Shown here: positions 12,240 through 59,957 of the stretch, piece after piece | How the letters are laid out: every line of letters starts with the position of its first letter | Numbering within the stretch: the first letter of the stretch is position 1 | DNA from: Chlorokybus atmophyticus | Lineage: Eukaryota; Plantae; Mesostigma and Chlorokybus algae | Direction of reading: 5' to 3' | DNA length: 64,000 nucleotides | NCBI GenBank assembly: GCA_009103225.1 | Contig: RHPI01003369.1 | Location: 1,826,017 to 1,890,016, forward strand | The notes under the pieces: generated by a model | The model's database searches: none | Seen by the model: the letters and a program-made list of their open reading frames with translations, nothing else | What the model was told of the DNA's origin: nothing | Made by a program: the position numbers and the translations under genes

Positions 12240-13698
12240 CAGTGCTGCAGCCACACGTGAGGGGTTCCTTTTTGCAGTCTAACTTGCGAGGCAGACTGTC
12301 CTATTAATAAGTTGTAACGTTATAAGCTGCTTAAATATGCTGCTCAAATGCGGGCTGGGAATGTCTGATGAGCAGTAATTTTTGCGCATGTGTCAGCTGT
12401 CGCAAATCTCAGCTTACGCAGTCAGCCTGGTGGTGTGCCAGCTAATGCTGGTAGGTTTCATCCTGGCAATGCCTAATTGGATGCGTTTTCCTCCACTAGA
12501 CTACATACCATGAGCGTGCACTGGCTTATCATTGCTTGTGCGCGAGTAGTGAAGTACCTTAGCGGCGTAGCAGCAGTGGGGCACAAGATCAGAAAGGCCA
12601 GTATTGATGTTGGCCACCACCTTGTGTCTGAGTTAGTACTGCTATATATTGTGCTGCTGTTCGCTTGCATGTGAACACGGCATGTGTGACATTGCATGCA
12701 CGGATTCCCCATTCCCTTTCCTATACATCATCACGAGCAGCGTGCCGTGGTCAATTGCAGCGTTCCTGCCTAGACTGCAGGGTTAGCGTTACATGTTACA
12801 GGAAGATCAACACCAAGCAGTCTGCTTCTTGATGTAGAAGCTGCGGCATGCTTAGAGCCCCCATATGGTAAGCGGTGTGGGTTGTTACTATCATGGTCTT
12901 GAGTTTGTGTATTGGTTACTGTACAAATAATGCGAAATGGAAATGCACATGCCTAGTGTACAGGATATGCGCGAGACAACTGGCGACATGACGTCACAAC
13001 AGCATAGCATACCAACCAGCATGCAAACAGGTGTGTCTATGCGGCTCGCAGTTGCTGTTACCACTGCATAGGATATGTGAAGTGCTGTTTCGCACACTTG
13101 TGTTGCGTGGGTAAGCATGACGGCCAAAGCGCCCCACCACGCACAGCTGATATGACAGTTGTAAAGGTTTACTATATACAAACAATGCGGGGCGCACTAT
13201 GCCACATCACATTGGAGATGAGCGTACGCAGCAGCGTAGACAGTGGAATAATACACGGCATGCAGCAGTACTCCACACTCTATATCGCTAAAGTAGTACA
13301 AGTCAAGGGGCACCAGCAGCCCGTGTGGCAGGTGATAATGATGACTACGCATGCTTGCATGCCTGATGGGGTGTAACGGTAGTATAGGAAGTAGCCAAGT
13401 TCGGAGGAGTAGATGAGCCCGGTGGGTAATAGAACATGCCTATGTGGCTGGCTGCTGCGTGCTTGTTGTGTGAACGTGGCACTATGTGCATGTACTATGC
13501 ATGCGCCACCCCACATCGCAATTTGTGTACACGTGTCATGCTGGCCACATCACCATCTGCAGTGAGCCCCTAGCAGTATGGGTCAATAATACACCCATAC
13601 CACAGCAACAACATAATTTGTGGACTTGTCCACAATAGCAACAGCGAACATGCTAGAATTGATCGAGTCATACAACCAAGGTGTGCACCAATACGCCG

Positions 13699-16600
13699 CT
13701 ATAGCAACCTTGTCTCCACACCCGCTTCAACTAAATGCTCTTTGACGGTAGCTATGGAAACCTGATATGTGGTCATTGTGTTGGTAATAAGCACAACTTG
13801 AGCGATCGGTCATGCACGCAACAACGAGAGCAACAAGTACAAGCACAAGCACAAGCAGACCTACCTCTCTTCTATGGAAGATGCCGGCAGCAAGCGCAGC
13901 AGCCGCTTCCGTCTGCTCAAACACTTGAGAAAAGTGCTCCGGCGTGCCCGCGCCACTGCTCGCGATGACCGGTATCGTTACAGCGTCTGATATCAACTTG
14001 ACAAGCTCCGTATCAAACCCTGTTCACAGGAGCAGTGAAAGATTAGAATCAGCTCTAAGTCCTATCACACAGTCAAGCAAAGAGTGACAGACAACAGCAA
14101 ACCAACAACAACTGACCTGTGCCTTTGCCATCCATATCAATGCAATTGAGTAGTATCTCTCCCGCGCCGAGCTCCTCCACGGCGATAGCGAGCTCGTAGG
14201 CACCAATATCACGGCCCTCTCTTCCCCCGGACACCGTGCACTGATACCACACGTACTCCTCGCCGTTGGGTCCGGGCCGCGCGGTCTTGATGGTGTGGTG
14301 TGGGATCTCGCTCGGGTCCTTCACGTACACCCTGCGCGGGTCGATGCTCACCACCACAGCCTGGTTACCGTACACGTAAGATATCTGCTCCAGGCTACTC
14401 GCGCCCGTCTTCACGCCCGTCTTGATAAACTCCTCGGCTGTAAAAACAGCGTCGCTACCTATCGATATCTTGTCCGCACCCGATCGGAAATACTCTGCTG
14501 CGACCTCCAAACTAGTATAGTGTCTGCAACAGAAAACCAACATCAACAAGAGCAACAAGCAAGTCAGTGAGCAAGCAACCACATGGGTAAGTTGTGTCCC
14601 TTGGATAGGACAACGTACGCACAGTTGCGCACAATCAACCCACGTACACAACAAGCACGCGTGCATCATACCTGCCGTTTGCATCGGTAAAGTCGCGGAT
14701 GCCACCTCCAACGGTAAGAGGCACGAACACGTTCTCAGACGTGCGCTGCAGGACTTCGAGCATGGGGAGGTCGCCTAGGGGGAAATCCCTGAACCCGGTG
14801 ATGTTCAAGAAGGTGACCTGTTTTGGTACCACAAAAACAGTAGGTCATACATCAACAGCAGGTGTGGTTGTCAATTGCAAGAGACGTGTGTACATAATTT
14901 TGTGTGGTATGACATAAAAACACAGGTCTCGACACTTGGGCGAACTAAACGCAACCAAGGGGATCGCATACAGCTCAACGATGATGCTATCACTGTGTCA
15001 AACACCCGATACAATGTTCACAAACATGCACGCAGTCTGTACATATAATACACAAATGATTTTATACAAATGTAGACATGAACCTTATACCCCAGCAAGA
15101 CTCCTTACCTCGTCGGCGCCTTCCTGGAAGTACCTTCCCGCCAGCTCGACCGGTTTCCCCAGGTTGCGCACCTCCTTCTCGCCGTGCGTCTCGCGGACGT
15201 CATACGAGTCTCCTTTGGTGACGACGAGGTCGCCGTCATCGTTGCTGCGGACGTCCAGGCACGCGATCACGCGCTTGGCAAGACGCGTCGCGGGGGGACC
15301 CTTGCGCTGGCTATGAGATGTTTCGAAACCGTTGAGGGTGGTGTGGCCCTCCGAACCGGCAAGGAACCTGTGTGAAGGTTGGTGTTGCTGACTTTGCGTA
15401 GGCAGACTGCTATGCGCGTGCACGTGCGCACGCAGATGCATGCGTGGGTGTATGTATGTCTGGGTGTGCGCATGTGTGTGCAAGACCGAGCTCCATGTCA
15501 CAATTGTGCGCGTGTGCATGTCTGTGTGGATGCATGCATGCCGAGTGGATGCGTGCGCGTGCGTGTGTGCGCGCAAGTGTGATAAAGCTCATCCCTGCCA
15601 TTGCAAGTTTCACTCATGCACCTGCCGACGATGTCGAGGCCGACAATGCCGCTCTTCTCGGGGTGAAACTGCGTGGCATACACCTCGCCGCGGTTGACTG
15701 CACTGACGAAGTCGTACCCGTAGTGCGTTGTCGCCAACACCCACTCCTCATTCTCCGCTGACTGTCAAGACAACACTTCCATGTAGCGAACAACGATGGC
15801 ATGGCCTCTCCTTTCTAACTGTTGTGTCACTTGGGGAACGAGTGGGGTGTGGTCAATGCAAGTGTTGCTTGCGTACACCACATGACACACACGCGCCACA
15901 TGATGTTGATGCTAATGTAATAACGCACGCACAGACACACACACATACCACTACTAGGTAGCAAAAAGTACTGAGTTCAGAAGCACAGCCTAAACCATTC
16001 TTGTTACGCGGCACTCACCGCGGACGCATGGTACGAGTGCACAAAGTACACGTGGTTCCCATCCACCCCATCCAGCAGTTGACTCTCCCTGATTGGTTTC
16101 AGTCCGTTCCATCCGATGTGCGGCACACGCAACCCATGATCGGAGCGGGGGAAGCGCACGATGCGGCCGGGGATGACGCCCAACCCTTCCACGCCGCCGT
16201 TCTCCTCACTGCCGTCGAACAGCAACTGCATGCCGAGACAGATGCCGAAAAAGGGCTTGTTGGAGCGGATGTAGTCCTTCAAGGGCTCGGCGTACCTGTG
16301 GTGAGAGGAGTCAACGCACATAAGGGCATATGCACACATGCGCACGCGCATATATGTGCACACGCAGATGAGCGCGCGCATGCTTACGTGTGTATATGCA
16401 TACGAATAAGCACATTGGTAATGGTTGTTTGAATGGTGCTATGAGTATGAAGTACACTCATAGCACTGCCCAGCTGGTGAAGTGTGAGTGCAAGAGTGCG
16501 CACAGGAAAAGGATATGCGTGCTTGTTGTGTGGCATGTGCACTTCTCACCCTTTTCTGACTATGACATCCATCGCGGCAGCAAATGCACCAACACCCGGG

Positions 16601-17216
16601 AATATCAGCCTTTCTGCACTGGCAATGTCCTCTGGCTTCGTGACCTACACACCAGTCATATCACGGAAACAGCCAGTCAAGGCAAGAAAAGACACACATG
16701 AGCTTAAAACCAGACAATAACACAAGAGTAGTACTCAATTACCTCCCGGACTTGGTAACCCAAATGCTTGATAGCGTTGCGCAGGCTGCGGACATTGCCG
16801 GCGCCATAATCCAGCACTGTCACCTCTGCGGACGCATGTTGAGTTACTGCATTGTTGAAGACGAGTGTGTCAACATAACAACAGGCTGCAATAGGAGGAG
16901 CAGGACAGCATGCACTAGGCTTGGTGTTTGAAACTGACTTCAGCTTGTCAAAGTAATACAGAGAAACCACAAGCATAAGCAGCGAAATTGTTATACTATG
17001 ACATGATACAGAAGAACGCAAGACAGTACCTTTGCTACTGCTGCTTGTGCTGCACACCACAGGTGAGGCTGCTCTGCTGCCACCGCCGCCGCTGCTGTTT
17101 CGTGTACTCCTCCGCCGCAGCTGCTGCAGCTCGTCGTTACCACAACGAGACGACGACGCCGAGCCGGCCAGCAACCTCTCCGACCCCGCCAGCAACGCCG
17201 CCGCCGCCGCCGCCAT
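13699..17216 (-). CDS. HISN4: Bifunctional imidazole glycerol phosphate synthase HisHF with plastid-type N-terminal presequence
   Basis: Exons 17030-17216, 16743-16846, 16550-16644, 16019-16295, 15622-15761, 15109-15367, 14672-14817, 14117-14523, 13865-14019, 13699-13761. HisH motifs: [39 protein letters not shown]. HisF motifs: [34 protein letters not shown]. Ala/Ser/Arg-rich 62-aa leader. Confidence 0.97.
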
Positions 17217-17401
17217 CCGCCACCGCCGCCGCAAAGCTGATATCCACTTTGCTATAAGATAGTATTCTGTTTGATTCTGTCTGTTTTTGGTGGTGAAGAT
17301 ATCGGCGCTGGGCGGCGGGGTGGCTGAGGGGGTTGCTGGCGTAGGGAGAATGGGATAAGTGGCGGCAGCGGAAGCCGCTACGCAGTGTTGTTGCCGTAGC
17401 C

Positions 17402-17905
17402 ATGGCCGCAGGGGAGCTGGTGGCGGAGCGTCGCCGCCGCCTGGAGGCGCTCCTCCTGGGCAACGCCCTGGCCGACTCCATGACGCTGAGGAGCTTCGCC
17501 CAAGCTTTCCCAAGACACACCAGGCAGGCTTACTACTCTGATCTGATCAGTAAGACACACAGTCTGCCTTGCGTGTTACTTAGCCGTATGACTGATTATT
17601 GTTGTTTGTAGGGGTTCCAGGGAGGTGCGGCTCCTGCACGGGGTGTACCTGCAGCACCGAGGGGAGATTAGGGCGCAGGTGAAGACAATGGTTGACAAGG
17701 AGTGTGCGCCCATCACGAAGGTGCGAGAGACAGTGTGGCCATGCACGCACAAAGGCACAAACAAACACACGCACACACATATGTGCACATGTGTGTGCGT
17801 GTGTTTGTTTGCAGACTCACACACGGGCGTGCACATGCACATGCATATACACACATGCATGCACGTCCGCAAGCACCAGGTAGACTGGCAAACAGCTGCG
17901 GGCAT

Positions 17906-17963
<58 letters not shown>

Positions 17964-18496
17964 CGACAATGAGCGCAACCGCTCACGCTGTCGGACAATG
18001 TGGCTCAAGGTTGTTGGTANAACACATACACGCACGCGCGTACACAACAGTTTGTATTTGCAATGCAGCTGTGGCATGGTGCAGGATGTGGGCGACTGCA
18101 GCATTGAGGAGGCCATTGCCAGGCTGGAAGCGCTCGAGAACAGTGCGAAGGCTGAGCTGCGCAGGCATCAAGCTGCCACTGAAGCCATCAAGAAGCAACT
18201 AGACAGGTGTGTACTGTAGTGGCTATTGCACGACACATAGCAGCACTCTAGTCCAGTCATACTTGAGCGTAATTGTGATATGAACGCTTGTGCAGTGTTG
18301 TTGGTGCACTCGACGAGTTGCCGCAGCCCGAGGTGGTGTCGCCGGAGCTGATGAAGGAGGATGCCAAGCTGCAGGTGCATTGCTTTTGTGTGTTTTGTTT
18401 GTTTGTATGTATGTTTATTCGTTTGTCATGTTCTTACCCTCTTCTCCCTGGCGTTACGGTCATGGAATTGACACACAGGCTATGCTCGGTCAATGA
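17402..18496 (+). CDS. Small (about 149 aa) Cnl2/Nkp2-like kinetochore protein; Nnf1/PMF1 is the alternative
   Basis: Exons 17402-17523, 17612-17720, 18085-18206, 18296-18374, 18479-18496; intron 1 needs a GC donor (AG|GCAGGC) to keep phase. Product: MAAGELVAERRRRLEALLLGNALADSMTLRSFAQAFPRHTRGSREVRLLHGVYLQHRGEIRAQVKTMVDKECAPITKDVGDCSIEEAIARLEALENSAKAELRRHQAATEAIKKQLDSVVGALDELPQPEVVSPELMKEDAKLQAMLGQ. It resembles, from memory, the Cnl2_NKP2 pattern L..F...FP...R....IR.LY....QR....V..NI..E and C-terminal VG.LSDL. The gene model is firmer than the family call. Confidence 0.6.
17908..17960. repeat. 53-nt poly-C homopolymer in intron 2 of the Cnl2/Nkp2-like gene
   Basis: Counted directly; exact length may be an assembly artefact. 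Confidence 0.85.
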
Positions 18497-20235
18497 CATT
18501 GGGAAACACACATCATGCACATGAGGCCCACAGCTCGTGGACGGGACCGAGACTGCACATTCAGGTGCATGGAAGGGGTGCAATATGAGAAATATCAGAA
18601 ATGAGCAGCCAACAAGTTGTTGGCTTATGCTAGCACGAGTTGTTGGGGTTGGGCCAAGTCTTGGAGGCAAAGCAACTTTGGGTCTATGCTGCGCAACAAA
18701 CCGGGTCCATGCCTTTTTTCCAAGTAGCACAATCCTTGTGCATCATATACGACAAGGGTCACAAAGTGTGCTTCATCTCACTAAAATACCTGCATACATG
18801 CAAGTTGAGTAACATAGTAGAGTTGTCAAGTAGAGTTATCAAGCTTTCTTTAGCGTACTATTTATGCTTTATCACTAGTGAACGTGTATATTATAAGTAT
18901 AGGCATAGGTATAGGTATGTTGTAGGTACTCATTAATATCATTTAATGAATATTGTTTTCGCATTTCCCTTGTTCAACACATCTTGCTTCAACCCCTCTC
19001 TCTGTTTATATGTTTCAAGCACTTTATACGTGAGCAATTAAGATGGAGGCTAAAAAGTAGTTAATCAAGAGTATTATACATTTGTTTTTATGTGTTTACA
19101 TTTGTATGTATGAAGGGATAGGGTCGAGGTAGGGGTAGCGCCATAGGGATACTAGCGCTAGGAATATGGGTAGGGATTATAATAAGCATGGCATATGCAT
19201 AGGCACCCCACATCAGTTTGATGTGACCTTTTATATCAAGAGTTTATATCAATTATATACCTCTCGACAATTAACTCCGACTAGACATCGACCCTACAGA
19301 TAGGGTAGTTAGGAAATCTAGCGTGAGCCAATCACAGCTTCGATAAGGTACCTATCAAAAGATACCTATTGTAAGGTACCTAACAAGATAGTGATCACAT
19401 TTTACCAAATGTGACATTAAATAGGCTTGAATAAGCGGTTTTACATCCATTGGGACTTATTTAAGATATGATAAAGCATCATAGCTTTAAATAAGCGAGG
19501 AACCGTAAAAAGAGGTATAAATAAGCAATTTATATACTTGTCCATACAGAATGTGTTACTTAGGTAGCAATAATACCCCTATTATTATTGCTCCCGTTAC
19601 AATTATCAACAATACTTGAGTGTCATTATGGCACATGCCAATTGTAGAAGCTCAAATATTATTCATGCAATTATACTGACAATTTGCTGATTCCCATAGC
19701 AAACATATCTCGTTATCCCTATGTCTACCCCATAAGTACTATCCTTCAAGGCTAGGGATAGGGAAAAGTTTTCCCTGTCTCTAGCCCTATCCCTATCTCT
19801 ATTACCATCACTATATCAACATCACATGCAAGCTAGGGTACCGCGCGGAACACACGGCGCTATCACTATTCCTATCCTGCACTATTAACAGTACGCCGAC
19901 TGTAGGGTACCGCGCGGAACGGTAGCAAAACAACGACGCACACGCAGCGGGCGCCAATTATCGCTGTACGGCAACACCTTCAACCAGCCCTGTTGCGCAG
20001 TGAATCGACGTAGTCGATAACTGACCAAAAACACAAAGTGACTGAAACGCCGACAAAGCCGGGTACCTTGCATCATTGACAGCCTAAAGAAGTTAACTTG
20101 GTTAACAATGAGCACAACAATTTGCAAGCATCTTCAAAAGTGAAATTGATAGCATGATGTGTTGCGCTTCTGAGTTTATGTAAGTTCATGAATCATGATA
20201 GTCATAATGTTATGCTTGAATTGAGAAAACTAGTT

Positions 20236-23972: not shown

Positions 23973-26647
23973 ATGGCTTCCACCAGCGGCCGCACCAGCA
24001 CTCGCTCTCCTCTATCAAGTGAACGCGCGCAAGCCACATTTAACCCTCGCCAGCTGTTCCTCGTGTTGGCAGGCAGCAAGCATGCGGCAGCTTTGCACGA
24101 GCGTGCACGTGACATTGTCGCGAGGGCGGCCGAGGCTCATCCCGACGTGCTGAAGCCGCACGGGGACGGCGCCGCCAAGGCCAACCTCACACACGAGGAG
24201 AGGTATGCACGCGCGATGGCAGCGGCGAAGGTGCTGCTCGATGTGGAGGAGCAGGAGGGATTGGATGCAGACGGCGAGGACAATGCTGTCCTGCGGGAAC
24301 TCATTGCGAATGAAGTGGGCGAAGCATTACCCTTGGATCTGCACAGGTGAGGTTGATGCTCCTGTAAGTTGCCACTGTGTTAGATGTGTGCACATGCGTA
24401 TGCACACGTGTGTGTGCATACACTGGCTCGCACGCCATCATGTGTCTGTGTGGGCGCGCGCATGTACGTGTGCTTCTGTCATTGGGCTTACCGTTTTACT
24501 TCTCAGGTATGTGTTTGGGGCGGCTGTGGAGTCGCAATGCGACGAGAAGCAGGCTGCGTTGTGGGTTCCTCACGTGCGTTCGAGCGCCGTCCTCGGGGCT
24601 TACGCACAGACAGAGTTGGGTCACGGATCTAACGTGCGCGGGATTGAAACCACCGCCACATTCGTTAGAGGAGACAGCACGTTCGACCTCCACACACCCA
24701 CTCTCACCGCGACAAAGTGGTGGCCTGGAGCGTTGGGCAAGACCGCCACGCATGCTGTCGTGTTTGCGCGCCTCATCGATGGCGAGGGCGTGGACCGCGG
24801 CGTGCACCCGTTTATAATTCAGCTGCGTGACATGCAAACCCATGTACCTCTTCGGGGTGTACACGTGGGGGACATCGGCGCCAAGGCCGGCATGAACGGC
24901 GTGGACAACGGCTTTCTGCGCATGAATTGCGTGCGCGTGCCTCGCGACGCACTCCTAGCTCGCTTCGCTTCTGTTGACGTAGATGGAAAGTACCACAAAC
25001 ATATTGGCGCGGACGCGCGTGGAGCGTACCTTACAATGGTGGACGTGCGTGTACGTTTTGTCGAGGGTTCGTGGCTCACGCTAGCGAAAGGCCTCACGAT
25101 CGCCATTCGCTACTCTGCTGTTCGCCGACAAGGCTTCATTGATGACAAGTCTATTGAAGAGAATGCTATTCTGGATTACCGAATGCAGCAGTACAGACTG
25201 CTGCCACTGTTGGCTGCCGCGTGGGCCATGCGCTTTGTTGCGGCGGACCTTCGCAAGCGACACGCGGAGTGTGTGAACGCGTTGAAGAACAGCGCCGATG
25301 CCGCGCTGTTACCGGAGCTTCACGCAGTCAGCTCTGGACTGAAAAGCCTCTGCACGCGCGTCACGGGGGAGGGGCTGGAGACATGCCGCAAGTGCTGCGG
25401 AGGGCACGGTATGTAACCTTCATGTTGTCTCGTGTGCTGGTTCTCACTCACATGTTGTCTCCGTGGTGCGCGCGCGCGCGTGTGTGCCTGCCTGCGTGTC
25501 TGCCTGCATGCTTGTGAGACAGCACATACACGTGCTTGCGCGTATATATATGTACATGTGTGCGTGCGAGGTTCTGTGCGTGTGTGGGTGTGTGGGTGTT
25601 AAAGTCTCTCACTGTACGTCCATTCAGGGTACATGCACGCGAGTGGCTTGCCGGACTTGCATGCGTGGTTCACGCACATGGAGACGGCCGAGGGCGACAA
25701 CCACCTGCTCACGCAGCAGACCGCGCGCTATTTGCTCAAGCAGCTTCGCGCCTTCGACAAGCAGCCCGTCACCAGTGGCGGTGGCAAGTGTGCAGCGCGG
25801 CACGAGTCGGAGCTGCGCGATCCCGCAATATACGTCGCCGCTCATCGCCATCACGCTGCCAGCACCGTCGCACGCTTCACCGCAGTCATCGGCAGCTCAA
25901 GACAGGCTGGCAGAAGTGCTGCCGACTCCTGGAATGATGCGTTGGTGGAGATCTTCCATGCATCCAAGTGAGTGGTTTTGTTGTACATGTTGTGTATGTT
26001 GTGTATGCTGTGAATGTTGGCTAATGAGACTACTGGTTTGTTGTGCAGTGCCTACTGCACCATGCTATTGGTGGAGAGCTTTGTTGGTTCTGTTGATGAT
26101 GCGGTCAAGGTTGTCGATGACGGAGCTCAGGCATCTGCCATCAAGGCGGTTCTGTCGAAGCTCTGCCACTTGTTTGCGCTGCACGCTATTGAGGAACAGG
26201 TATGCACACGCTCTCAGCTTGTTGTTGCACGAGCACGGTATCAACAAGGCAACGATACAGATGGGAGACTATCTGGAGGAAGGCTTCTTCACCCCTCAAC
26301 AGGCACGCGGAGTGCGCAGACAGGTGTGTTGTTAACTTCATGGTTGTTGTGTGGCTCAGTGCTTGACATGATGACAACATCACTCTTCTCTCATCCAGGT
26401 GCGTGCATTGCTGATGGAGATACGCCCGGAAGCAGTTGCATTGGTGGATGGCTTTGGCATTTCCGATTATGCGCTCAATTCTGCATTGGGCCGGAGCGAC
26501 GGCCGCGTTTACGAAGCCCTGTATCAGTCGGCACTGGCGGAGCCCCTCAATGCAAAGGATGTTGTGCCGTCTTACGACACGCACATCAAGCCCATCCTTA
26601 CCCGTGGTGCCGCTAAGCTTGCAACCTTCGGGCATGCGCGGCTGTGA
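23973..26647 (+). CDS. ACX1: Peroxisomal acyl-CoA oxidase (ACX1/ACOX1 type), about 692 aa
   Basis: Exons 23973-24346, 24507-25408, 25628-25967, 26049-26199, 26261-26323, 26399-26647. Motifs: GAYAQTELGHGSNVRGIETTATF, TKWWPGALG, GDIGAKAGMNGVDNGF, AIRYSAVRRQ, CRKCCGGHGY, catalytic EGDN, SALGRSDGRVYE. C-terminal ARL is a PTS1. Confidence 0.95.
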
Positions 26648-28914: not shown

Positions 28915-30949
28915 ATGGCGGAGCAGCTGATTGGCCGCGGTGGAGGCGGCGGGATGGCTGGGGAGGATGGTGGAGGGGGCGGTCTGCTGGGTGCGGCGAC
29001 CGCCCCGCTGACGTTCCACGACTTCCTGCTGAAGATGCGCCAGCCGGGCGCCGCCGACCTCGTCCGCGCCATACGCAGGTTGGGCCGGGAGCTTAGGGTT
29101 TGGGGAGTGAATGTGTGTAACTGTTGCTGTAATCAAAATGCGTGGAGCCAACTTTAGACACCAACACTTCACGTGCGTTCTCAGCGACTGCCCATTGCGC
29201 AATTGAGAAATGTGCCCAGCTGTTTTCTCATGTGTGTTTGTAAGCGTGCGTGCTGAGTGCTGAGGCATGTAAGGTGTGCGTGTGGGGTTGCGTGCGCACA
29301 CCTTACATGCCTCTCATTGATCCGTGGAAAGAGGAAATTGTGGTGCATGCTACACTTGAGGGGGGGAAAAACAAACCAAAACAACAGAAGGCTCTGGCCA
29401 GTGTCTGTCTCCTGCATTGCCACACGCAATGCCACTCAGCAACGCACAGCCTCGGGTTTATCATTGTTGATTGTGCACAGCATATCCACAAACAACCCTC
29501 CCCTTCGCCTGTAAGTGTTAACAAGTGTGCACACTCGCAGCTTCATCCTGACGTTCACGTCGGTGGCCGGCCCGCGTGACGCCTATCGCGACTCATCCTC
29601 CGTGCAATCCTTCCTCACCGCCACGAAGAATTCCATCCGTGCGCACCCCGTGTGGGCCGGCGCCTCCGAACCCGCCCTTGACGCCGCAGGCGAAGGCCTC
29701 GAAAAGTGAGCACGTGTTGATGTTGTGACAACATGGGATCTGATAGTCATTGTTTCATCAGGTATTTGATGACCAAGTTGCATGATGCGGCGTTTGGTGC
29801 TGCGCCTGGTGATAAAGAGGGGGATGTTGAGCTGGATCGAAGGATGAAAGTGTTGCAGACGTTCCTCAAGCCCGAGCACCTCGACATACCCGCGCGACAC
29901 CACGACCAACAGACCTGGCTGGTACGCACGCAATGAGATGGCTACGGAGAAGGGCTTTTGTAACTGCGCGCACATGTGCGTGTGTGTGCGAGTGCGTGAA
30001 TATGAGTGGACGAGGGCACGGGCAAAGGAGTGCTCATGCAATGCATGCAAGCATGCAGGCGCGTGTGTGTGCGCGCAAGTTATAAGCATGTATGTTGCGT
30101 TGAAAGCGTGAGAGTGTGATTGACCATTCACCCTTTCTTCAGCTGGCGGTGAACGAGCTCTCGCGCATGAACCAGTACAAGGCTCCCCGTGACAAGCTCG
30201 TGTGCATCCTGAACTGCTGTCGCGTGGTGACGAACCTCCTCAATGCCTCCGCCGCGTCCTCCGGCAGCGGCGAACAGCAACAGTCCGCTCCCGGCGCGGA
30301 CGACTTCCTCCCCGTGCTCGTGTACATCACGGTGCAGGCCAACCCGCAGCAGCTTCACTCCAACCTTGAGTACATCGCTCGCTACCGACACGCGCCACGC
30401 CTCGCATCCGAGACGGCGTATTTCTTCACCAACCTCGTGTCGGTGGAGGCTTTTCTGCTGAACCTACACGCGGGGTCGTTTTCTATGGACCCAACGGAGT
30501 TCACACGCCGTATGCGTGACGCGGGCATCGAGATCAACAACAACAGTGATGATACTATGACCAACGACAACAACGCTGATGATGTGCAGCGCACTCCTCG
30601 TGCGCAGCCGTCGCCTGCGTCCCAACGTGTTGTTGCGCGTGATCCCGACGCCGAGGTCGCGCGTCTGACTGCGTTGGGTGCGGCCGTGGTGGTGGAGTCC
30701 GGCAGCGTGCGAAGCAAGCACAAGTATGTGTACGCGGACGCTGGTGATCTTACCGTGGGCGACGCGTACACGCTGCTCGCAGAGTACAAGGAACTGGTGA
30801 TGCGGCTGGAGTCGCTCACAGCCGGCATCAAAGCAGACATGTTGAACACGCCCGCAGAGAGCACCGCACACCCACGCGCCGAGGAAGACTATCATCATCA
30901 CGCACGTGACGACAACCCTCAATCTGCCGACGAACACAACGACGACGAT

Positions 30950-30996
<47 letters not shown>

Positions 30997-31366
30997 ATCT
31001 GGGCGGCTTCAGAGTGCTCTCAGCAATGCTGACTATGAGGCTGCCGTGCGGTCACTCGAGGAGGCTGAGCGTGCGGGAGCGCTCGTGGAGACGGCTGCTG
31101 TGGAGGACGCTGTGGATGGAGTTGGTGTTGATGTGGCTGTTGGTGAAGACGTGTCGGGAGATGTTGGGTTGGAAGATGCTCTGCGAGCTGTTGTTGCGAA
31201 CGAAGCGCGCGCGTCCACGACTGCGAGGAAAGGTATGTTGGATGATGATGAAGATGACGGTGGTGAGGGTGAGGGTGAGGGTGAGGGTGTGTCACATGTT
31301 GCTTCACGCAAAGAGTTGGGTCAGCAGGAATCAGATAGCGAGCATGTAGTAGGAGCTGCGGGATGA
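28915..31366 (+). CDS. VPS9A: VPS9-domain Rab5 guanine-nucleotide exchange factor (plant VPS9a type)
   Basis: Exons 28915-29078, 29541-29705, 29762-29921, 30143-31366. Motifs: TFHDFLLKMRQPGAADLVRAIRSFI, AHPVWAG, GEGLEKYLMTKL, FLKPEHLDIP, KAPRDKLVCILNCC, GADDFLPVLVY, SETAYFFTNL. Start could instead be ATG 28954. Confidence 0.95.
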
Positions 31367-32489: not shown

Positions 32490-35474
32490 TTAATTAAGGA
32501 GGAACCCGCCGTCGAAGAGAGAAGGCTTGAGCAGCGTGTTGTTAGTGAAGTTGATGTTGTTATCGATGTTGTTAATGTAGTTGTTGTTGTCGAAGATGGC
32601 GGGCTTGATGTCGGCTTGGCACTCGTCGAAGATGCTGGGTTTGATGCCAGCGTACAGCGGGTCCACATCATTGAAGGGTGTGACACAAGTTGGTTTCATG
32701 TCAGCGAGGGACACTAGGCAGTCTGAGCACACAAACTGCGGGGGTGGGGCGAGAGAGTCTTCCGTGATGCCGTTGCAACGCGTGTGTTGCCACACCTCGC
32801 ACACGTCACAACATACCATCCTCTCACCGTCGTCGTCACGCGCACCACATGGGCAACGCACCGTCCAGCTGTCAGCGTCCTCACCCTCGAAGCGCCACGG
32901 CGAGTCCACGTCCTCTCCACAAGCGCGCAAAACCAACACGGGCGGAGGCGAGAGCAGGAGTGGTCCACATGTTGGGTCTCCACTCCCCACCTTCATAGCT
33001 TTGAGCACCCACTCAGCGGGCTCGCCATCACCAAGAGCCTCCAACCCAACGACCGCGTCCACACGTAGTCCACGTAGGGCCGGGTACACGCCTCTGAACG
33101 CGCGCTCGGCCTCGCGCTTGAGCTCACCCAATGTGGCGCACGCCGACACGCTGATCAGCTCCGATGGCGGGGCCACATTGCGCCGGGCTGCGATGCGAGG
33201 GTTGTTGTCCAACATCACCGTGCACGCCACATGATGAACCGCCTCTAAAGTGTGAGAGGGGATGTGGGGTGAGAGTGTGAGATTGGATGATGAAGAGGAG
33301 GAGCAGGAGATGAGGGCGCTGTTGGAAGAGTTGTTGTCATCGTTGTTGGGGGTGGGCACGTCCCCGCGGTAGTCCTTCATGAGGTGTTTGGTGTCGAGAA
33401 TGATGCGGGCCGCCTCGGCAATAGAGGAGAAGTGGCTAACAACAACGTTGGTGCAGAAGGCCGGGGCATAGCTTGCGAGGACGTACTTGTAGATGAGAAG
33501 CATGTCGCGCCACACCTGATCGCGGGAGGGGAGAGCAGGGATAGGTGGCCTTGATGTTGTGGTGGTGGTGGTTGTTATTGCTGGTGAGGAAGAAGGATGC
33601 AGTGTGGCAGCAGCAGCCTCAACTGGGTCAAAGAGAGTGGGATCCTGCAGATGATACTCGAGGACTTTTGTGCGCGTGTTGAAGGCGCGGCGTACAGCAA
33701 CATCCCCAACGATGCGGTTGCCGATGGACTTGAGCACATGGTCGAGGAGGCCCGTGTCACCAATGCGCTGGCGTGCGCCATCCCTTAGCTCTTGCCTTGT
33801 CATGAGTGGCTTCGTCGCCACGCGCAGCACGTCCACAACAACACGCGTGGCGAGCTCCACGCGCTTCGCTGACCACCTGCACGGGGCTGTCCCACTGGCT
33901 GTCGTGGGCTTATTGTGGCTTGTTGTCACGGTTGTCGTGGTTGAACACGTCGGGGAGGATGTTGTGGAGGACGAGGCTGCCTGCACCAGCTTGATGTTGG
34001 TGTCCACATCATTGCCGGCTGTGTCCTTGAGGTGCATCATGTAGCGCAGCAGCTCCCCCAACGTGGCGAGTGTCTGCGGGTGCTCCAGGCGCAGCCCCCA
34101 CGCTGCGTACGCCACGTACGTGTTGATGGTACGACTCACACCCGCGCTCCCGACCACATCCGTGACGCCCTCAAAGTCTTTCAGTATGGCTTGGAGCGGG
34201 GCCGCACGCACAATGTCCACAGCGGTAGCGAAGCAACGTGGCGTGATGCCATAACTCCCTCTCCCAAAGGTGTAGCCCCAACGTGCGAACCAGGGAGCTC
34301 CAAAGGCAGCCGCGTGGAGGAGACGATAATCACACGCGCCGCCGTTGGGTTTAAGCTTGCGTGACACGTCCTCTACGCTGACTTGTCTTGCGCGCACGGT
34401 GGAGCAGAGACGGTCCCACAACTCCATCAGCTGCGTGCCGGACAGGCGAGGGGACCCGCCCTCGCGACCGTTCATGCGAAGAAGGTGACCGAAGCCGTTG
34501 CCGTGAAGAGTGCCGTGAAGGAGGTGGGTCGCGCATTCCAGCGCAGATAAGGAGGAGGACAGACATGCCGGCAGCCATGACGACCCGCATGGCTTGCACG
34601 CCCTGTTTGAGAGACCATCAACATCAGGACCATGGTCATCCATGTCATAAGCACAAGCACCGTACCGTCCCAACGTGGCTGCATGCATGCATGCAAGTCG
34701 GCTGTACGTAAAGTCTACCAGCATGCAAGCCACAAGCCAATCAAAAGCTAGCACGCGGGCAAACGGAATACACAGCCACACATGCGAGGACTGACTCTTC
34801 AGCTGACCGTTGCAACACTGACTGACACCTTGCGCAGCATTGGGGCAATGTTGGCTGCTGACTCGCTCATAACTCAAAGTATGAGGACAGCACATCCATG
34901 CACACCTGACAAGTGAGCCGGGTGCAGCTCGAGGAGATGATGATGGCGCCGCCGTCTGGCATGCGGGGCAGCAGCCGGCGGCGACAGGGGCAACGTGCAC
35001 AGGGTTGGGGATGATGAAGTGGTAGCGGAAGGCTGTGACGGGATGGTCGCCCCAGCCCATCACCTTGCAGTGGTCGCAATGCAGCGGGCGGGAGTGGTGA
35101 GAAGAGAGCGCCATCGCTGCCAGGAGGTTGCCCTTGCGCCGCCTGTCATCCTCTACCGCCTCCGTCAGGTCCTCCTTGTACACCAGCACCTCCACGCCAG
35201 CGGCGTCGTCCACCACCACGCGCCAGCACTGCAGCCCGGGCTCCGCCACATGCAGGGGCTCCCCGAACTGCTGAATGAACGCCTCCACGGCCGTCCTGAA
35301 CGCAGGGCGGCAGGCGCCCGTCCTCGCCGCCCCATCGCCGCCGTCGCCAACGACCTCCACGGGCACACCAGCCACCACGTCGACGGTGAGCGGGCAGCCG
35401 TCCCCGGTGACCGCACGCCGCCGCTGCTTGGCAGGAGGCGGCTCCCCTGCTTGGATCAGCACAGCACTATCCAT
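32490..35474 (-). CDS. MALE STERILITY1 / MMD1(DUET)-like PHD-finger protein
   Basis: Family motifs: CDHCKVMGWG..YHFIIP, HLLHGTLHGNGFGHLLRMNG, LMELWDRLC, YRLLH..AFGAPWFARWGYTFGRGSYG; MMD-type CRWSAKRVELA...LRDGARQRIGDTGLLDHVLK...NTRTKVLEY; PHD VRCPCGARDDDGERMVCCDVCEVWQHTRC. ATG 35474 chosen because the ORF-track start is TTG. Probable in-frame intron(s) at 34679-34905. Confidence 0.92.
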   Translation of the reverse strand: MDSAVLIQAGEPPPAKQRRRAVTGDGCPLTVDVVAGVPVEVVGDGGDGAARTGACRPAFRTAVEAFIQQFGEPLHVAEPGLQCWRVVVDDAAGVEVLVYKEDLTEAVEDDRRRKGNLLAAMALSSHHSRPLHCDHCKVMGWGDHPVTAFRYHFIIPNPVHVAPVAAGCCPACQTAAPSSSPRAAPGSLVRCAWMCCPHTLSYERVSSQHCPNAAQGVSQCCNGQLKSQSSHVWLCIPFARVLAFDWLVACMLVDFTYSRLACMHAATLGRYGACAYDMDDHGPDVDGLSNRACKPCGSSWLPACLSSSLSALECATHLLHGTLHGNGFGHLLRMNGREGGSPRLSGTQLMELWDRLCSTVRARQVSVEDVSRKLKPNGGACDYRLLHAAAFGAPWFARWGYTFGRGSYGITPRCFATAVDIVRAAPLQAILKDFEGVTDVVGSAGVSRTINTYVAYAAWGLRLEHPQTLATLGELLRYMMHLKDTAGNDVDTNIKLVQAASSSTTSSPTCSTTTTVTTSHNKPTTASGTAPCRWSAKRVELATRVVVDVLRVATKPLMTRQELRDGARQRIGDTGLLDHVLKSIGNRIVGDVAVRRAFNTRTKVLEYHLQDPTLFDPVEAAAATLHPSSSPAITTTTTTTSRPPIPALPSRDQVWRDMLLIYKYVLASYAPAFCTNVVVSHFSSIAEAARIILDTKHLMKDYRGDVPTPNNDDNNSSNSALISCSSSSSSNLTLSPHIPSHTLEAVHHVACTVMLDNNPRIAARRNVAPPSELISVSACATLGELKREAERAFRGVYPALRGLRVDAVVGLEALGDGEPAEWVLKAMKVGSGDPTCGPLLLSPPPVLVLRACGEDVDSPWRFEGEDADSWTVRCPCGARDDDGERMVCCDVCEVWQHTRCNGITEDSLAPPPQFVCSDCLVSLADMKPTCVTPFNDVDPLYAGIKPSIFDECQADIKPAIFDNNNYINNIDNNINFTNNTLLKPSLFDGGFLLN

Positions 35475-38400
35475 GAACCAGTCCCACGACAGCGCCGCCG
35501 CACCTACTCCACCTCCTGGCCCTCCCTCGCCGCCGCCGCCGCCGCCGCCGCGGCCGTGAATGCAGCAGAGTCGAAACGCTACACAGACTAGCAGAGTGAG
35601 GGAAGGTACCGCGAGGGAGGGGTGACGGTACGGAGCATGGGGCGCCGCATCATGCAAAAATCATGCCCATCGGGGCGGAAGGGCGACTTTTTCCGCTGTG
35701 TCCACTTGCCCTGCTAGGGACACCTGACGCGACGGCTCCGCCGCGCTGCGCCGGACGCGTGATGTCAGACCGCGCCTGCCGTGTCAAGCGGTGTTTCCCT
35801 TTTTTACGGCGCGCAACTAGCAAAGGACCGCACGCTCCCTGTGCCCCCATTCCGTCCCTCTAACCCTGACTGGATGAGAATCCCTGGCAGCACCGCTGCC
35901 GCCGGCCAAAGCATCCGGTAAAGTTTAAGAGAAAAATTACACGCTGGACCACACTTGTGTGGGCCAAATTGGTGGGCTTCAAGCCGCATCAGTGATGCAG
36001 TCTCACTCATGCCCTCGGCTCACATCAAGTGTCTCTTCCTGTTTCGTTATGTTTCCGGTTTGGCGAGTCATAGGTGACAATGGAGAAGTTTTCGTTACTG
36101 CCGAAGTGCCCTGGTCGGACGTATTGAATAGAACCGATTGCGGGCAGGTCTGGGGTGACGTCGCCGCGGCACAGTGACCGGCGCGCTGGAATGATTCTTC
36201 GGATCTTTGGTTCTGACCTCAGGCCGAGGTTACCGGCGCCACAACACCTGGCTACGGCGGATATTATCCCCTGTGCCACAGAAGATGCCAGTGCCCAGTG
36301 GGCACTGCCGACCCAATGAACGGCGCAACCAGGGGCCACGACGACGTCCCCTGACAGCCATGGTACCCTGGCACTGTGACCAATACGACGGCGTGGATAC
36401 CGCCGAGTCTGCCGCGGGCTCTTGACCTAGAGCGCGCAGTGTGCAGCCTGCTACACCTACCTGTGCATGCTGTGTGCCTAGAACACGCCGTCGAACCGTT
36501 GGGGCGGGGTCATCAAGTACAGCTGTACTACAGTACCTATGCAGAAGTACCCTGATTCGTAAGATCATGTGTGATCTTACCAGCACAGGCCTACTGGGGG
36601 GTCCCACTGGGGGTAGCATAGCCTATATCATGTACCCGCCTATAGTCTGGTACCTGGTAGGGGCGACTATGCATGTCATGATGTACCATGCTAGATATTG
36701 GTGGGCGCTACGGCTCGTGGGCCATAACTGGGCGGCACCACTATCATGAAGGTGCCCATTTAGTCAATGGGAGGGTGTTCTTCAATTCTAGCGGCAATGT
36801 CACAGTCAAGTTGAGACTCTCAATGCGTGTGACATTATGAACTCGGAATGTCATTTGTTGTGCTACGCGTACCTAGTTTGGGTACGATGTGCAGTGCTGC
36901 TGTGGTATGGTGGTGGCTGGCGTGACCGGCAAAGTGTCGCAAACGGTCGCGACTGACCGCCGAGTCCGAGCCTTGCTGAGGCACAGGGAGTACGCCCCTA
37001 TTAGGTCGAACAGAAAGTGGCTGGGTTATCTGCTGCCTCATCAGTCGCGGGGTGCCAATACCTTATTGGCCCTACACTCAGAGAACTTCACTCAAGTTGA
37101 AACCAAGTTCTGATCATGCGACTGGCACTCACTGCACTGGGCCATGGCCACCGGTAGGCCTAAGAAGGCCTAGGTAGGCATTTGGCCAATGGTACATCGA
37201 CCAAAGCAATGTGGCTCATGGGCCATGAGTCATGGCGTTTACATCTCAAGTTTCGTGGAACCCTAAGGCTACTTTGTATGCAACGTACCGTAGTGCTGCG
37301 AAATCTTCATCAAAGAGGCCTTGTAAATTATATGAATTCTTCTGCTAAAAGCCCGCATCCTAATGTGTTGATGTAATATATGCATATGTTCAAGCGCGAA
37401 AAGACTATTAAGATTGTTAATTTAATATTGTGCCCGTGCGAAGTTATTTATCTGTAAAACATTTGTGGTACGGCATATATATGCCGGTATATGGTGAAGC
37501 AGACTTGTATAGACCTATCATATGTATTAATTGCAGCATTAAATAACCTGAGTTAGCCATTGTGTTGTTATACTTTATACCTTACAGTCAATAATAATAT
37601 TCACGCTCAATGCATGTTTAATGCTGATTACGAGCTAAATGAGCAATTTTAAACAATCTTAATGGGGGTATCAGCAATGGCGGCGGCGATGACGTTATCG
37701 TTGATGATACATGCAATGACGATGAACATAATGCATTCAAAATGCTGCTCATCATGTTAAAGTGGTAGGGTGGTGGTAGAGTATAATAAGTTGCCATAAG
37801 CAAAGCCATAAGCAGAGCAACTGCGCATGCCAATACTATACTTACTGCGCATGGCCGTCGAGAAAACGCAGAATGATCTTGCATGGCATGTAAGCTCTAT
37901 AAAGAAAGAAGCAGATGTTGTCGCATTTGGATAGATTTCAAGCGATTATATTTGCACGCGACTCTCCTGCGGATTCCAAACAGCTGCAAAACAATGTTAG
38001 AACCTAGATGCCCAGAGAAGGGCAACTACAGGTTTTAACATTGTACATACAACATGTGAAAGTCATCTGTTGAAGCGTTGCATAATCTTGCACTCAGCTG
38101 CCAGAGCGTTTTAAGGGGCGCGAGCCTGACCAACAGCAATCAGTTGTGCATTAGAAATGGTAACAGCCCTCTCAGCAAATGGAGGGGCATACTTAGTAAG
38201 GACCCGCGCGCTTGAGTGCCGATTAATTTGGTTCAGCTGGATTACGAGGATTGAAGATGAAGTCGCGTCAGCACGAGGTACATTTGCAACAACAGAGGTT
38301 CTTTCAGCAATTAATTGCTCTCAGCATCTGGTGATGCTGGAGCCAGAATATGGTTGTCGTCAGCGGTAACATACTGCAAGAGTTGATTAGATGGTCAGCT

Positions 38401-55255: not shown

Positions 55256-55335
55256 ACGGTTTACGAAGGTGAGAGAGGAAGTGTGTGGGCGTTTACACTT
55301 TTCATTCGGAAGCGGAGTGTAGTGTGTTAGTGGAG

Positions 55336-56364
55336 ATGGAGGATGCTCGCATGGAAGAGCTTCAAGCTGCCATCTTGGCACTGAGGGAAGAGCTTCATCA
55401 CACTCAAGCGGCGGCACAAGCACAACGCGAGGCGTATGAGCATGCGATGGCGCGTGTACAAATTCCCATGGCATCAAGCTCGCGCGTGCATGTGAAGGTG
55501 CCAAAGCCCAAGCCATTCAGGGGTCAACGTGATGGAGATGCAGTGGAGGAATGGATTTTTCAAGTATCGTCTTGGTTGAAGCTCACGGAGGTGCCCACGC
55601 ATCTGCACGTGGAGGTTGCAGCGACATTGCTTGAAGGTGCAGCACTTGTGTGGTGGAGGCATCGATGTACACGTGTTGCAAACGGGTTGGCGCTACCATT
55701 GACCACCATGGAAGAATTGGCACTTGAGGTTAGGCATCAATTTGTTCCCGTTGAGAGCGTGAAGGCCGCACGCGACAAACTTGCAGCCCTTGTGCAAATG
55801 GGGTCGGTGATGGCGTACACGGCCGCGTTTCAGCGATTGGTGATGTCCATACCCAATATGACCGAGGAGGAGCAGTTGGACAGGTATACACGTGGTTTAA
55901 AACCTTTGGGGCGTAAAGAAGTGGAGCTACGGGACCCGAAGACACTCGCGGAGGCTATACGCATCGCGGAGCGTCTCGACGCGTTGTACTTCAAGTCCAC
56001 CACAAGAAACACTGACTGGAGGCAAAGGCATGGTGATCAGCCCCGGGGAGGCTTTCAACATGCATGGAGACGAGGAGAACCAAGTTTAGCACTTGCCAAT
56101 GGAGGTGGAGCTGACTCTGGGCCTGCACCAATGGAGGTGGGTGCCATACACACACATGGAAGTGAGGCGAAGCACAGCGGACGTGGTGAAAGAGGTAAAG
56201 GTGTGCGCAAGTGTTATGCGTGTGGGTCGACGGAGCATTTGGCGTACGGATGCCCCAAACGAAGCACGCAAAGGCCAACACCGGATGGCAACCCTCGCCG
56301 TGATCGTCGCGTCACCACCATGGAGCAAAATGGCGTGGAGCAGGAAAACGACTTCCCCCAGTAG
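55336..56364 (+). CDS. gag: Gag (Retrotrans_gag region plus CCHC zinc knuckle), intact ORF
   Basis: KVPKPKPFRG...VEEWIFQV, LEGAALVWW, EQLDRYTRGLKP, PAPMEVG, CYACGSTEHLAYGC; ends QENDFPQ-stop. Confidence 0.95.
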   Translation: MEDARMEELQAAILALREELHHTQAAAQAQREAYEHAMARVQIPMASSSRVHVKVPKPKPFRGQRDGDAVEEWIFQVSSWLKLTEVPTHLHVEVAATLLEGAALVWWRHRCTRVANGLALPLTTMEELALEVRHQFVPVESVKAARDKLAALVQMGSVMAYTAAFQRLVMSIPNMTEEEQLDRYTRGLKPLGRKEVELRDPKTLAEAIRIAERLDALYFKSTTRNTDWRQRHGDQPRGGFQHAWRRGEPSLALANGGGADSGPAPMEVGAIHTHGSEAKHSGRGERGKGVRKCYACGSTEHLAYGCPKRSTQRPTPDGNPRRDRRVTTMEQNGVEQENDFPQ

Positions 56365-59300
56365 GTGAGGAGGCTTTTGCTGGGGATAGGAAGGAGCCTC
56401 ATGCACGGACGGATGCTGTGACAGTTCCATTAAAGAAGCAAGAAGAGATGGCTTTGAACGCGCCAATGGTGGTGAGTTATGCAAACGAGGAGACAACAAA
56501 GTACTTCAGGCTTCGAGCACACATTTGCGATGACCAAGGACGATGGAGAGAGTGTAAGCTCATGATTGATAGCGGTGCCAACAGCAACTTTATGAGTATT
56601 GATATTGCGCGGCGTTACGGTTGGCTTTCGTCATTACGAGGAGGTGAAGTGAAGCTCGCTGATGGAGAGCCACCCTCTGGAGGTGATGGCGCTGCGTTTA
56701 TGACCAAAGAGTTGTGCGTTTGCATTGGGAAGATGAAGGAGAGCATGCGGTTTTGCTGCATCACCCTACGGAACGGGTTTGATGGGATTTTGGGACTACC
56801 GTGGCTATGGCAACATAATCCAGCCATCAATTGGAGGAAGCGCGTGTTCACCATCGAGCGAAACGGTGGAGAGTCCATTCAAGCTGCATCGGGACGTCAT
56901 CGAGGCGCGGCACGCACAATTAGGTGGTACAACAATTGCCCAGATCTCATATGTGCAATTGAGGAAGTTATTGTCTCCACGGAAGGCAAAGGCTGCATGG
57001 TTGTGCGTGGTGCGCGAAAACACTGCAAAGTCAGCACCGGAGCTGAGTGACGATGTTCAGACGGCTACTATGGACCCCGAGGTGTGTAAACTTGTTAAAG
57101 AATACCAAGATCCTATATCATGGTGGACGGACTTCCATCTGGTCTACCACCTCCACGGAGCGTAGACCACCGTGTGGAGCTGATTGAGGGCGTGCACAAG
57201 CCACCGTATCGACCCGTATACAAGTTGTCACCTTTGGAACTGGAAGAGGCCGAGAGGCAGGTGGCGGACTTGCTGGAAAGAGGCTACATCAGGCCTAGTA
57301 AGTCCCCCTATGGTGCACCTATTTTGTTTGTACGAAAGAAGAACGGGAGCTTGCGCATGTGCGTCGACTACCGAGCTCTCAACAACATCACGAAGAGGAA
57401 TTGCTTTCCACTCCCACGTATCGACGAGTTGCTGGAGCAATTGCAAGGTGCGCAGTACTTCACAACACTTGATCTTGCTGGAGGTTATCACCAAATTCGC
57501 ATCGCGCCCGAGGATGTGGAGAAAACAGCTTTTAACACACGTTATGGGCACTACGAGTGGTTGGTCATGTCCTTCGGACTTACGAACGCACCGGCAACAT
57601 TTCAAACGCTTATGAACAGCGTTTTTGCTGACTTGATTGGTAAGGGAGTCCTCGTGTACCTCGACGACATTTTGGTGTACGCGACAACAAAGGAGGAGCA
57701 CGTGGCACTTCTACGGCGCGTGTTGCAGCGTTTGCGCGAACACAAGTTGTACGCCCAGCTACAGAAGTGCAAATTCTTGCTTCGAGAGGTGGAGTACCTA
57801 GGCCACATTGTGTCGCATGAAGGCATCAAGCCGGACCCCAACAAAGTGCAGGTGGTGCGCGAGTGGGCTGCCCCGACCAATGTAAAGGAGGTGATGTCCT
57901 TTTTAGGCCTTGCGGAGTATTATCGCAAGTTTATCATGGGGTTTTCGCGCATAGCTGCTCCCTTGACTACCCTACTCAAGAAGGGAAAGCATTGGAGCTG
58001 GTCAGCAACAGAGGAACATGCATTTGCTGCGTTGAAGAAGGCGCTGACGGAGGCACCAGTCCTGGCTCACCCCAACATGGAAAAGACATTTATTTTGGCT
58101 TGCGACGCGTCCGACACAGCCGTAGGAGCTGTTTTGCAGCAAGACCATGGCAACGGCCTTCAACCAGTAGCATTCTTCAGCAAAAAGATGAGTGGTGCGG
58201 AGCTGAATTACCCCGTGCACGAGAAGGAACTTTTAGCGCAAGTCATGGCGCTACGACAATGGCGTTGTTTTCTGGAAGGCAAAAAGTTCGTGCTTGAGAC
58301 GGATCACTCTCCACTGAGGTACTTACAAACACAACCTCATCTGAGTCGCAGACAAGCTCGATGGCTTGAGTTCTTTCAACTTTTTGACTTCGATATCAAG
58401 TACAAGCCCGGTACGTCAAATGGTGTTGCTGACGCGCTGAGCCGGCTTAATGCAATTGAGGCACTCGCTCAAGTGCAGCCCGAGTGGACCGACCAGATTC
58501 GGCAAGTGCTTCGTGAAGACACGGAGGGTATGAAAGTGTTGCAAGAGCTGGAAAATACAGCTACGGACACAAGTGGGCACTGGTCAATGCGCGACGGGCT
58601 GCTGTGGCACCATGGGCGCTTGTACATCCCCAACGTCGCGCATATCCGTGTGAAGTTGCTGAAGGAAGCTCATGACGTGCCCATTGCTGGTCACCAAGGG
58701 TTGGAAAGGACTTTGGCAAGCTTAAAACAGCGTTTTTACTGGCGAGAGATGCATCGCGATGTGCGCGACTACGTGGCGTTGTGCGACGCATGCCAAAGGG
58801 TGAAGGCAAGCAACCAAAAGCCAGGTGGGTTGCTGCAACCTCTCCCTGTGCCATTGTCCAAGTGGGAGCAAGTTACCATGGACTTTATCACGGGGCTACC
58901 AAAGACAAAAGAAGGGTACGACGCTATACTTGTGTTCGTCGATAAAACCAGCAAAATGGTACGCTTGGCACCGTGTAGTGAGTCTTGCACGGCACCGGAG
59001 GCAGCACGCTTGTTCGTGAAGCATGTATTTCGTTCTCATGGATTACCACGAAGCATTGTGAGTGATCGCGACCCGCGCTTTACAAGTAAGTTTTGGGAGG
59101 CGCTGCATAGTGCACTGGATACCACATTGAAGTTTAGCACGGCATTCCACCCGCAAACTGATGGGCAAACGGAGCGGGCCAACCGTGTGATCGAGGACAT
59201 GCTGCGTTGCTACATTAACGCGCGACAAGACAATTGGGAGGAGCTGCTTGAGTTGGTTGAGTTTGCGATCAACAACCACCACAATGCAAGCACAGGTGTC

Positions 59301-59957
59301 ACTCCCTTCCTTATGAACTACGGGCAACATCCATTGACACCGTTGACGGCATGGACACCGCGACGACATGACGTGCGTGTGGAGGCAGCTAATGACTTCC
59401 TTACAAAGTGCGCGGACATTAACAAGGCAGCTAGGGATGCGTTATTGGTGGCACAAAATCTGCAGAAGCAGTACGCGGGCGCGTATCGCCGACACCTCAC
59501 GTTTTAGGAAGGCGACATTGTGTTACTCTCCGCGAAGCACGTCCAGGTGCGTACGGGAGTTCGCAAGCTGAATGAACGCTGGTTGGGACCATTTAAGGTC
59601 AGCAAAGTTATCTCGGACGTGGCGTACAAGTTGGAGCTACCCGACACCATGCGTGTGCACCCCGTTTTTCACGTCTCCCTTCTGAAAGCATATCGAGGAC
59701 AACCGCCAGAAAGGCCACCCCCCGAAGTTGGCACGGACGGTGAACCCGAGTGGGAGGTAGAAGACATCCTTGGTGAGAAGTTTGTGCATGGCGTACGCAA
59801 GTTCTTAGTGAAATGGAAGGGCTATCCGTTGCATGAAGCATCCTGGGAGCCAGAGGCACACTTGACTAATGCTCAAGACGTTGTGCGTGCCTATCTTGCT
59901 CGACGACAACCTCGCGAGCTTCGAGGACGAAGCTCACCTGGGGGGGGAGGAGTGTAA
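56343..59957 (+). pseudogene. pol: Pol (protease, RT, RNase H, integrase, chromodomain) with lesions as assembled
   Basis: Protease LMIDSGA; RT SKSPYGAPILFV, RMCVDYRALN, YLDD; RNase H CDASD, ETDH; integrase HDVPIAGH..CDAC, MDFI, SDRD, QTER; WLGPF; chromodomain EWEVEDIL..FLVKWKGY..SWEP. Two frame switches near 56870 and 57115, and an in-frame TAG at 59505-59507. Confidence 0.93.
59940..59952 (+). promoter_or_regulatory. Polypurine tract
   Basis: GGGGGGGGAGGAG directly before the 3' LTR. Confidence 0.93.

Follow-up and report, generated by a model that had tools for sequence, protein, structure and literature searches.

Does a green alga encode Nkp2, a small inner-kinetochore subunit? Nkp2 in S. 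cerevisiae, and Cnl2 in S. pombe, are non-essential subunits of the Ctf19 complex/CCAN. The question is raised by a locus at 17402-18496 on the forward strand of a 64,000-nucleotide stretch (the window) of the Chlorokybus atmophyticus genome. A preliminary description, made from sequence alone, had proposed here a spliced gene for a Cnl2/Nkp2 protein. We find at this locus an expressed, conserved and mis-annotated protein of 149 aa. Its likeliest identity is a distant Nkp2/Cnl2 family member, a reading to which we give a probability of about one half.

The preliminary description had attributed the DNA to a green alga, and rightly: C. atmophyticus is a streptophyte green alga, and the product of the locus is found under the label Chlat1, which we take to be the JGI code for the genome of this species.

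A transcribed five-exon gene with a GC-AG intron

The gene is read from five exons on the forward strand that, translated one by one, give 149 aa. Exon 1 (17402-17523, 122 nt) begins with a start codon in the context gccATGg and encodes residues 1-40 and two bases of codon 41. It is followed by intron 1 (17524-17611, 88 nt), whose ends are GC..AG (GCAGGC ... TTTGTAG). Exon 2 (17612-17720, 109 nt) finishes codon 41 (R), adds 36 residues and is followed by GTGCGA; the GT..AG intron 2 (17721-18084, 364 nt) is seen both in sequence reading and in transcript contigs. In exon 3 (18085-18206, 122 nt, with GTGTGT next) begins the predicted long C-terminal helix. Past intron 3 (18207-18295, 89 nt, GT..AG), exon 4 (18296-18374, 79 nt, with GTGCAT directly 3') completes this helix and goes on, through a loop with a proline, to the beginning of a short final one. 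Intron 4 (18375-18478, 104 nt, GT..AG) separates it from the coding part of exon 5 (18479-18496, 18 nt), which consists of AMLGQ and the stop codon TGA.

All four introns end in AG, in a pyrimidine-rich or CAG context, and their phases (2, 0, 2, 0) are compatible, yielding 149 codons. The longest plain open reading frame in the frame of the gene has 69 codons; an ORF scan therefore misses the gene, as the preliminary description had noted. Its five-exon model, with the GC donor, is reproduced in exons, phases and frame, and each of the peptide strings quoted for it is found in the exon translations.

The 5' untranslated region covers at least 17292-17401, as given by the start of a transcript contig and by sequence reading, and holds an in-frame stop at 17342. 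An upstream ORF of two codons (ATG GGA TAA) occupies 17350-17358, 44 bases 5' of the start codon. The 3' untranslated region spans 18497-18800 and continues further, with about 130 nt more in the same contig.

We matched the locus to four public runs (X1-X4), which come from two studies under one organism label, and mapped their contigs onto positions 17200-18800. Of the words sampled from the stretch, 6-26% occur in the runs, as expected for runs carrying exons only. Their RNA label is a guess, and contigs that are devoid of the four introns cannot derive from genomic DNA.

One X1 contig, 976 nt long, covers the locus from 17292 to past 18800 and spans all four joints. The first joint was reported as 17521>17610, with 88 bases skipped and 3 bases of slack, in X1, X3 and X4. 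Among the four placements that this slack permits, only the one shifted by +2 yields a known intron type, so that intron 1 is the GC..AG intron 17524-17611. The resulting 17523/17612 junction, set beforehand as a point at which the proposal could fail, is supported by contigs of three runs.

Joints 2 to 4 resolve to GT..AG exactly at the predicted sites. The 17720/18085 joint is exact in X1 and a few bases off in the diverged X3 and X4; the mRNA across exons 2-3 measures 230 nt in all three lineages. The 18206/18296 joint occurs in all four runs, including X2, which is 100% identical and carries this third joint, while the 18374/18479 joint is found in X1, X3 and X4. The five-exon gene is real and expressed, and its reading frame is confirmed.

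In X3 and X4, some contigs read through intron 4 unspliced (in X4, a contig covers 18346-18505 with no joint). They represent either the unspliced precursor or a retained-intron form; retention of the intron would swap the last five residues for a longer Cys/Phe-rich tail.

The X3 and X4 contigs are only 90-95% identical and have the same joints. At this identity, they belong to diverged lineages that share one organism label. The X3 alignment extends from 17388 to 18552 and that of X4 from 17401 to 18505, that is, over the coding part and a few bases more. Among the differences listed, which are the best-supported ones, the ratio of synonymous to non-synonymous codon changes in the frame of the model is 5:4 for X3 and 9:6 for X4. 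In the other two frames, the same differences mostly alter residues or touch stops. In exon 2, the changes ATT>ATC and AGG>CGG seen in the relatives are silent in the frame of the model only. The 149-aa protein is conserved between Chlorokybus lineages, and the changes, being a partial list, are an indication of purifying selection and not a dN/dS estimate.

Intron 2 has an unusual composition. A run of about 60 C is followed, some 60 bases later, by a single N at 18020 (span 17899-18020), and CA/TG-rich near-palindromic repeats lie upstream of the C run (17750-17880). The stretch 17899-18020, passed over as a repeat in read mapping, may be poorly assembled.

The official gene model is mis-spliced

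The database product of the locus is eukprot:jgi/Chlat1/6078/Chrsp4S06347. It shares its start and its stop with the transcript-supported model, and the length of 149 aa is the same in both by coincidence: the two proteins match at residues 1-40 and 77-149 only, and residues 41-76 of Chrsp4S06347 are wrong. In Chrsp4S06347, exon 1 is extended to a GT donor at 17550; exon 2 is read in the wrong frame (translation of 17614-17676), with its donor at 17679 and the next acceptor at 18069; and five extra codons precede exon 3. The joints specific to this model are absent from the mapped transcript contigs of X1-X4. Its database entry lists no Pfam domain.

Other donors for intron 1 were considered and rejected. 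Joining the donor at 17550 to the acceptor at 17612 puts exon 2 out of frame, would run into a stop with the true donor at 17721, and is found in no contig. With the donors at 17562, 17573 and 17575, the phase is wrong, the intron shrinks to 37 nt or the acceptor is poor.

Many gene finders disallow GC donors, and the GC-AG intron 1 is the likely cause of the mis-splicing. A single intron of this type would then throw an exon out of frame and hide the sole recognisable domain of the protein from every proteome-based survey. This lesson for annotation holds whichever family the protein belongs to.

Family assignment of the protein

Family searches were done piecewise, with single exons, sub-cuts of them, Chrsp4S06347 and its parts, against the 24,736 families of Pfam. 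The Nkp2/Cnl2 family is represented there by Cnl2_NKP2 (PF09447), a profile of 65 positions with a gathering score of 27 bits. Exon 1 matches it at 12.1 bits (E 0.21) over residues 17-39, which fall on profile positions 8-31. When residues 16-40 are taken alone, Cnl2_NKP2 is the sole match of this 25-residue core, at 12.5 bits (E 0.16, profile 10-31). The highest score, 15.1 bits (E 0.025, profile 8-35), is obtained with residues 1-49 of Chrsp4S06347, the last three residues coming from the wrong model. The alignment is collinear and N-terminal, as is the position of the domain in family members, and no other kinetochore head-domain family is matched by any piece.

The preliminary description had stated that the first 70 residues follow the Cnl2/Nkp2 pattern. 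This stands for some 23 residues (17-39); it does not for exon 2, which holds two of the three motifs it had quoted. Three cuts of exon 2, where the second half of the profile is expected, gave no match to Cnl2_NKP2, and its sole Pfam match is irrelevant (E 0.11). The assignment to Cnl2/Nkp2 is thus weakly favoured by exon 1, at 12.1-15.1 bits, and weakened by scores below 27 bits and by the silence of exon 2; in both respects the protein is unlike the known Nkp2/Cnl2.

In other respects, it is like them. Yeast Nkp2 has a length that we take to be about 150 aa, next to 149 aa here. AlphaFold2 predicts for residues 77-149 a helix of 41 residues, a proline loop and a helix of 14 residues, with a mean pLDDT of 86.5. 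The predicted long C-terminal helix fits the plan of Nkp2, a hairpin followed by a long helix (PMC6407923).

A protein restricted to this lineage, small, helical and coiled-coil, could also have no relation to the kinetochore and resemble Cnl2_NKP2 by chance. We consider this rather unlikely. All scores of the family are below threshold, and on exon 1 they are exceeded by those of a plainly spurious family, the bacterial HrpB connector (E 0.006); for this Ala/Leu/Arg-rich peptide, E-values of 0.01-0.2 are therefore near noise. The lack of a Cnl2_NKP2 signal in exon 2 points the same way. On the other hand, no Pfam family, Cnl2_NKP2 included, is matched at E<=10 by seven ORFs that served as controls and were taken from other frames or the opposite strand of this GC-rich stretch.

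The odds of such a match can be roughly estimated. For Cnl2_NKP2 alone, a 12-bit match is expected by chance in about 1e-5 of peptides; with an estimated 1e4-1e5 peptides per genome, this amounts to a fraction of one false match. Moreover, the sole match of the core among 24,736 families is to one that shares with our protein its size, an N-terminal domain and a long C-terminal helix. Such agreement in size and architecture lowers the likelihood of a false match. The candidate was first picked by the same resemblance that Pfam scores, and so the two lines are not independent.

A chance resemblance would also agree with the failure of every search that we ran to find a homologue. An exhaustive HMMER search with exon 1 against 1.84 billion representative proteins returned only Chrsp4S06347, 100% identical over residues 1-40. 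In word searches, exon 2 gave no candidate and Chrsp4S06347 found only itself. Single-sequence searches of the PDB, with exons 1 and 2, Chrsp4S06347 and its residues 1-49 and 77-149, found no chain of Nkp2 or of another kinetochore protein: the matches were to a kinesin stalk, mL40 and a hydrogenase, all at E>0.02. Look-ups of exon 1 and Chrsp4S06347 in the ESM Atlas, which is uninformative for fragments, gave short HTH fragments or nothing. The sole JGI match to the C-terminal half, a metagenome locus (L001:1470-3254), was rejected: it encodes a thiamine-diphosphate enzyme on a bacterial-looking contig, which has the eight-residue word ELPQPEVV in common with exon 4 by chance.

The C-terminal half, finally, attracts generic coiled-coil matches, as a chance resemblance would have it. 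Its best Pfam match is the uncharacterised family DUF7880 (PF25306), at 20.1 bits and E 7.8e-4; a STAT coiled coil, prefoldin and Sos7 match the same helix, and a kinesin stalk is found as well. We read the DUF7880, STAT, prefoldin and Sos7 matches as coiled-coil noise.

The weak match to Cnl2_NKP2 could instead come from a paralogue. Profile-profile search shows Nkp1/Nkp2 to be homologous to Mis12/Nnf1 (PMC6601020), and any of these ancient paralogues within the Mis12/NANO superfamily (Nnf1/PMF1, Mis12 or Nkp1), built on the same hairpin-plus-coil plan, might produce it. One of them, Nnf1/PMF1 (PF03980), is a subunit of the Mis12 complex and has the plan that our protein would have, an N-terminal helical hairpin and a coiled coil. 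Unlike Nnf1/PMF1, our protein has no PF03980 match at E<=10 on any piece, and the rival that the preliminary description had itself put forward gains nothing from this check. Nor do the Mis12 and Nkp1 families match any exon, Chrsp4S06347 or its parts at E<=10; for all three families, the filters of HMMER may mask very weak matches. Profiles routinely find Nnf1 and Mis12 in the green lineage, in every green alga tabulated and in nearly every land plant (PMC6823300); an Nnf1 of Chlorokybus is accordingly expected to match its own family. We regard a paralogue as improbable.

Membership in DUF7880 itself is the least probable of these alternatives: the match to the C-terminal helix (18.3-20.1 bits; residues 84-127 to profile positions 69-113 of 127) would be collinear with a domain that spans the whole protein, but it scores below the cut-off of 27.5, lies wholly inside the predicted long helix that draws other coiled-coil families and has no counterpart in exons 1 and 2, and a literature search on the family found nothing.

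Possible place in the kinetochore and in plant evolution

If the protein is a distant Nkp2, its role can be proposed from yeast. In the yeast Ctf19 complex, Nkp1 and Nkp2 build a four-helix head from their helical hairpins, and their C-terminal helices make a parallel four-chain coil with Okp1 (CENP-Q) and Ame1 (CENP-U) (PMC6407923). This layout resembles that of the Mis12 complex (PMC6407923, PMC6601020). By analogy, the N-terminal ~75 residues of the Chlorokybus protein would fold into a helical hairpin and make up such a head together with a partner similar to Nkp1/Fta4. Through its long C-terminal helix, the protein would take part, with Nkp1, CENP-Q/Okp1 and CENP-U/Ame1, in the parallel four-chain coil at the base of the inner kinetochore (CCAN). 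Nkp1/2 cap the COMA pillar and are dispensable for assembling the remaining complex; in vertebrates their place is taken by a functional analogue, the small helical CENP-R, which caps the CENP-O/P/Q/U pillar (PMC7614391, PMC9252888).

The host sets our candidate apart from known Nkp2 proteins, which published tables list only in Opisthokonta, Apusozoa and Amoebozoa. Across the 109 species in Table S1 of Plowman et al. 2019, Nkp2 is scored present in fungi and in a few animals (Nematostella, Saccoglossus), as well as in Salpingoeca, Thecamonas, Physarum and Acanthamoeba (PMC6823300). It is scored absent from 20 out of 20 Archaeplastida, Klebsormidium included, and from SAR, haptophytes and cryptophytes; Nkp1 is likewise scored absent from plants, green, red and glaucophyte algae, SAR, haptophytes and cryptophytes (PMC6823300). 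Chlorokybus is outside this sampling. The presence profile of Nkp2 correlates best with those of CENP-P/Q/U (0.64-0.69; PMC6823300). Reviews describe most CCAN subunits as unidentified in Archaeplastida and hold that concluding that the CCAN is absent needs further analysis (PMC9252888). Reconstructions place Nkp1/Nkp2 already in the last eukaryotic common ancestor (PMC6601020).

The preliminary description had read the gene as a sign of an older, fuller inner kinetochore in streptophytes, followed by loss. The published absence of Nkp1/Nkp2 from the sampled Archaeplastida agrees with this reading, which hinges on the family of the protein. It is quite possible, and we propose it tentatively, that Chlorokybus keeps Nkp2 within a whole inner-kinetochore NANO module, and that the plant lineage began with a fuller CCAN that it lost later.

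Were the protein an Nkp2, it would extend a known family to a lineage with no earlier report of it and be the first Nkp2 beyond animals, fungi, their close relatives and amoebae. Its presence in one of the earliest-branching streptophyte lineages would be direct evidence of a fuller ancestral CCAN in the plant lineage, would date the loss of the CCAN within streptophytes, and would add a data point for ancestral Nkp1/Nkp2 from the other side of the eukaryotic tree. Our literature search found no paper on the Chlorokybus kinetochore (co-mentions in passing only), none on the CCAN of streptophyte algae and none pairing Mesostigma with CENP-N.

A divergently transcribed neighbour is read on the minus strand at about 13500-17216, its N-terminal Ala/Ser-rich stretch beginning near 17216. 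It holds a His_biosynth domain at 14073-14708 (E 1.6e-11), and a peptide in the ORF 16704-17513 looks by eye like a glutamine-amidotransferase (HisH) motif. Together, they point to an imidazole glycerol phosphate synthase of the fused type (hisHF). The arrangement also suggests a promoter region of about 190 bp common to the hisHF candidate and the Nkp2-like gene; contigs of X3 cover 17200-17253. Elsewhere in the window, Pfam identifies an acyl-CoA oxidase (24205-25413) and a VPS9-domain protein (30116-31363) on the plus strand, a PHD-finger protein with an At1g33420-like ubiquitin-like domain on the minus strand (32490-35654) and, on the plus strand again, a Ty3-type LTR retrotransposon with gag, RT, RNase H and integrase (55285-59504).
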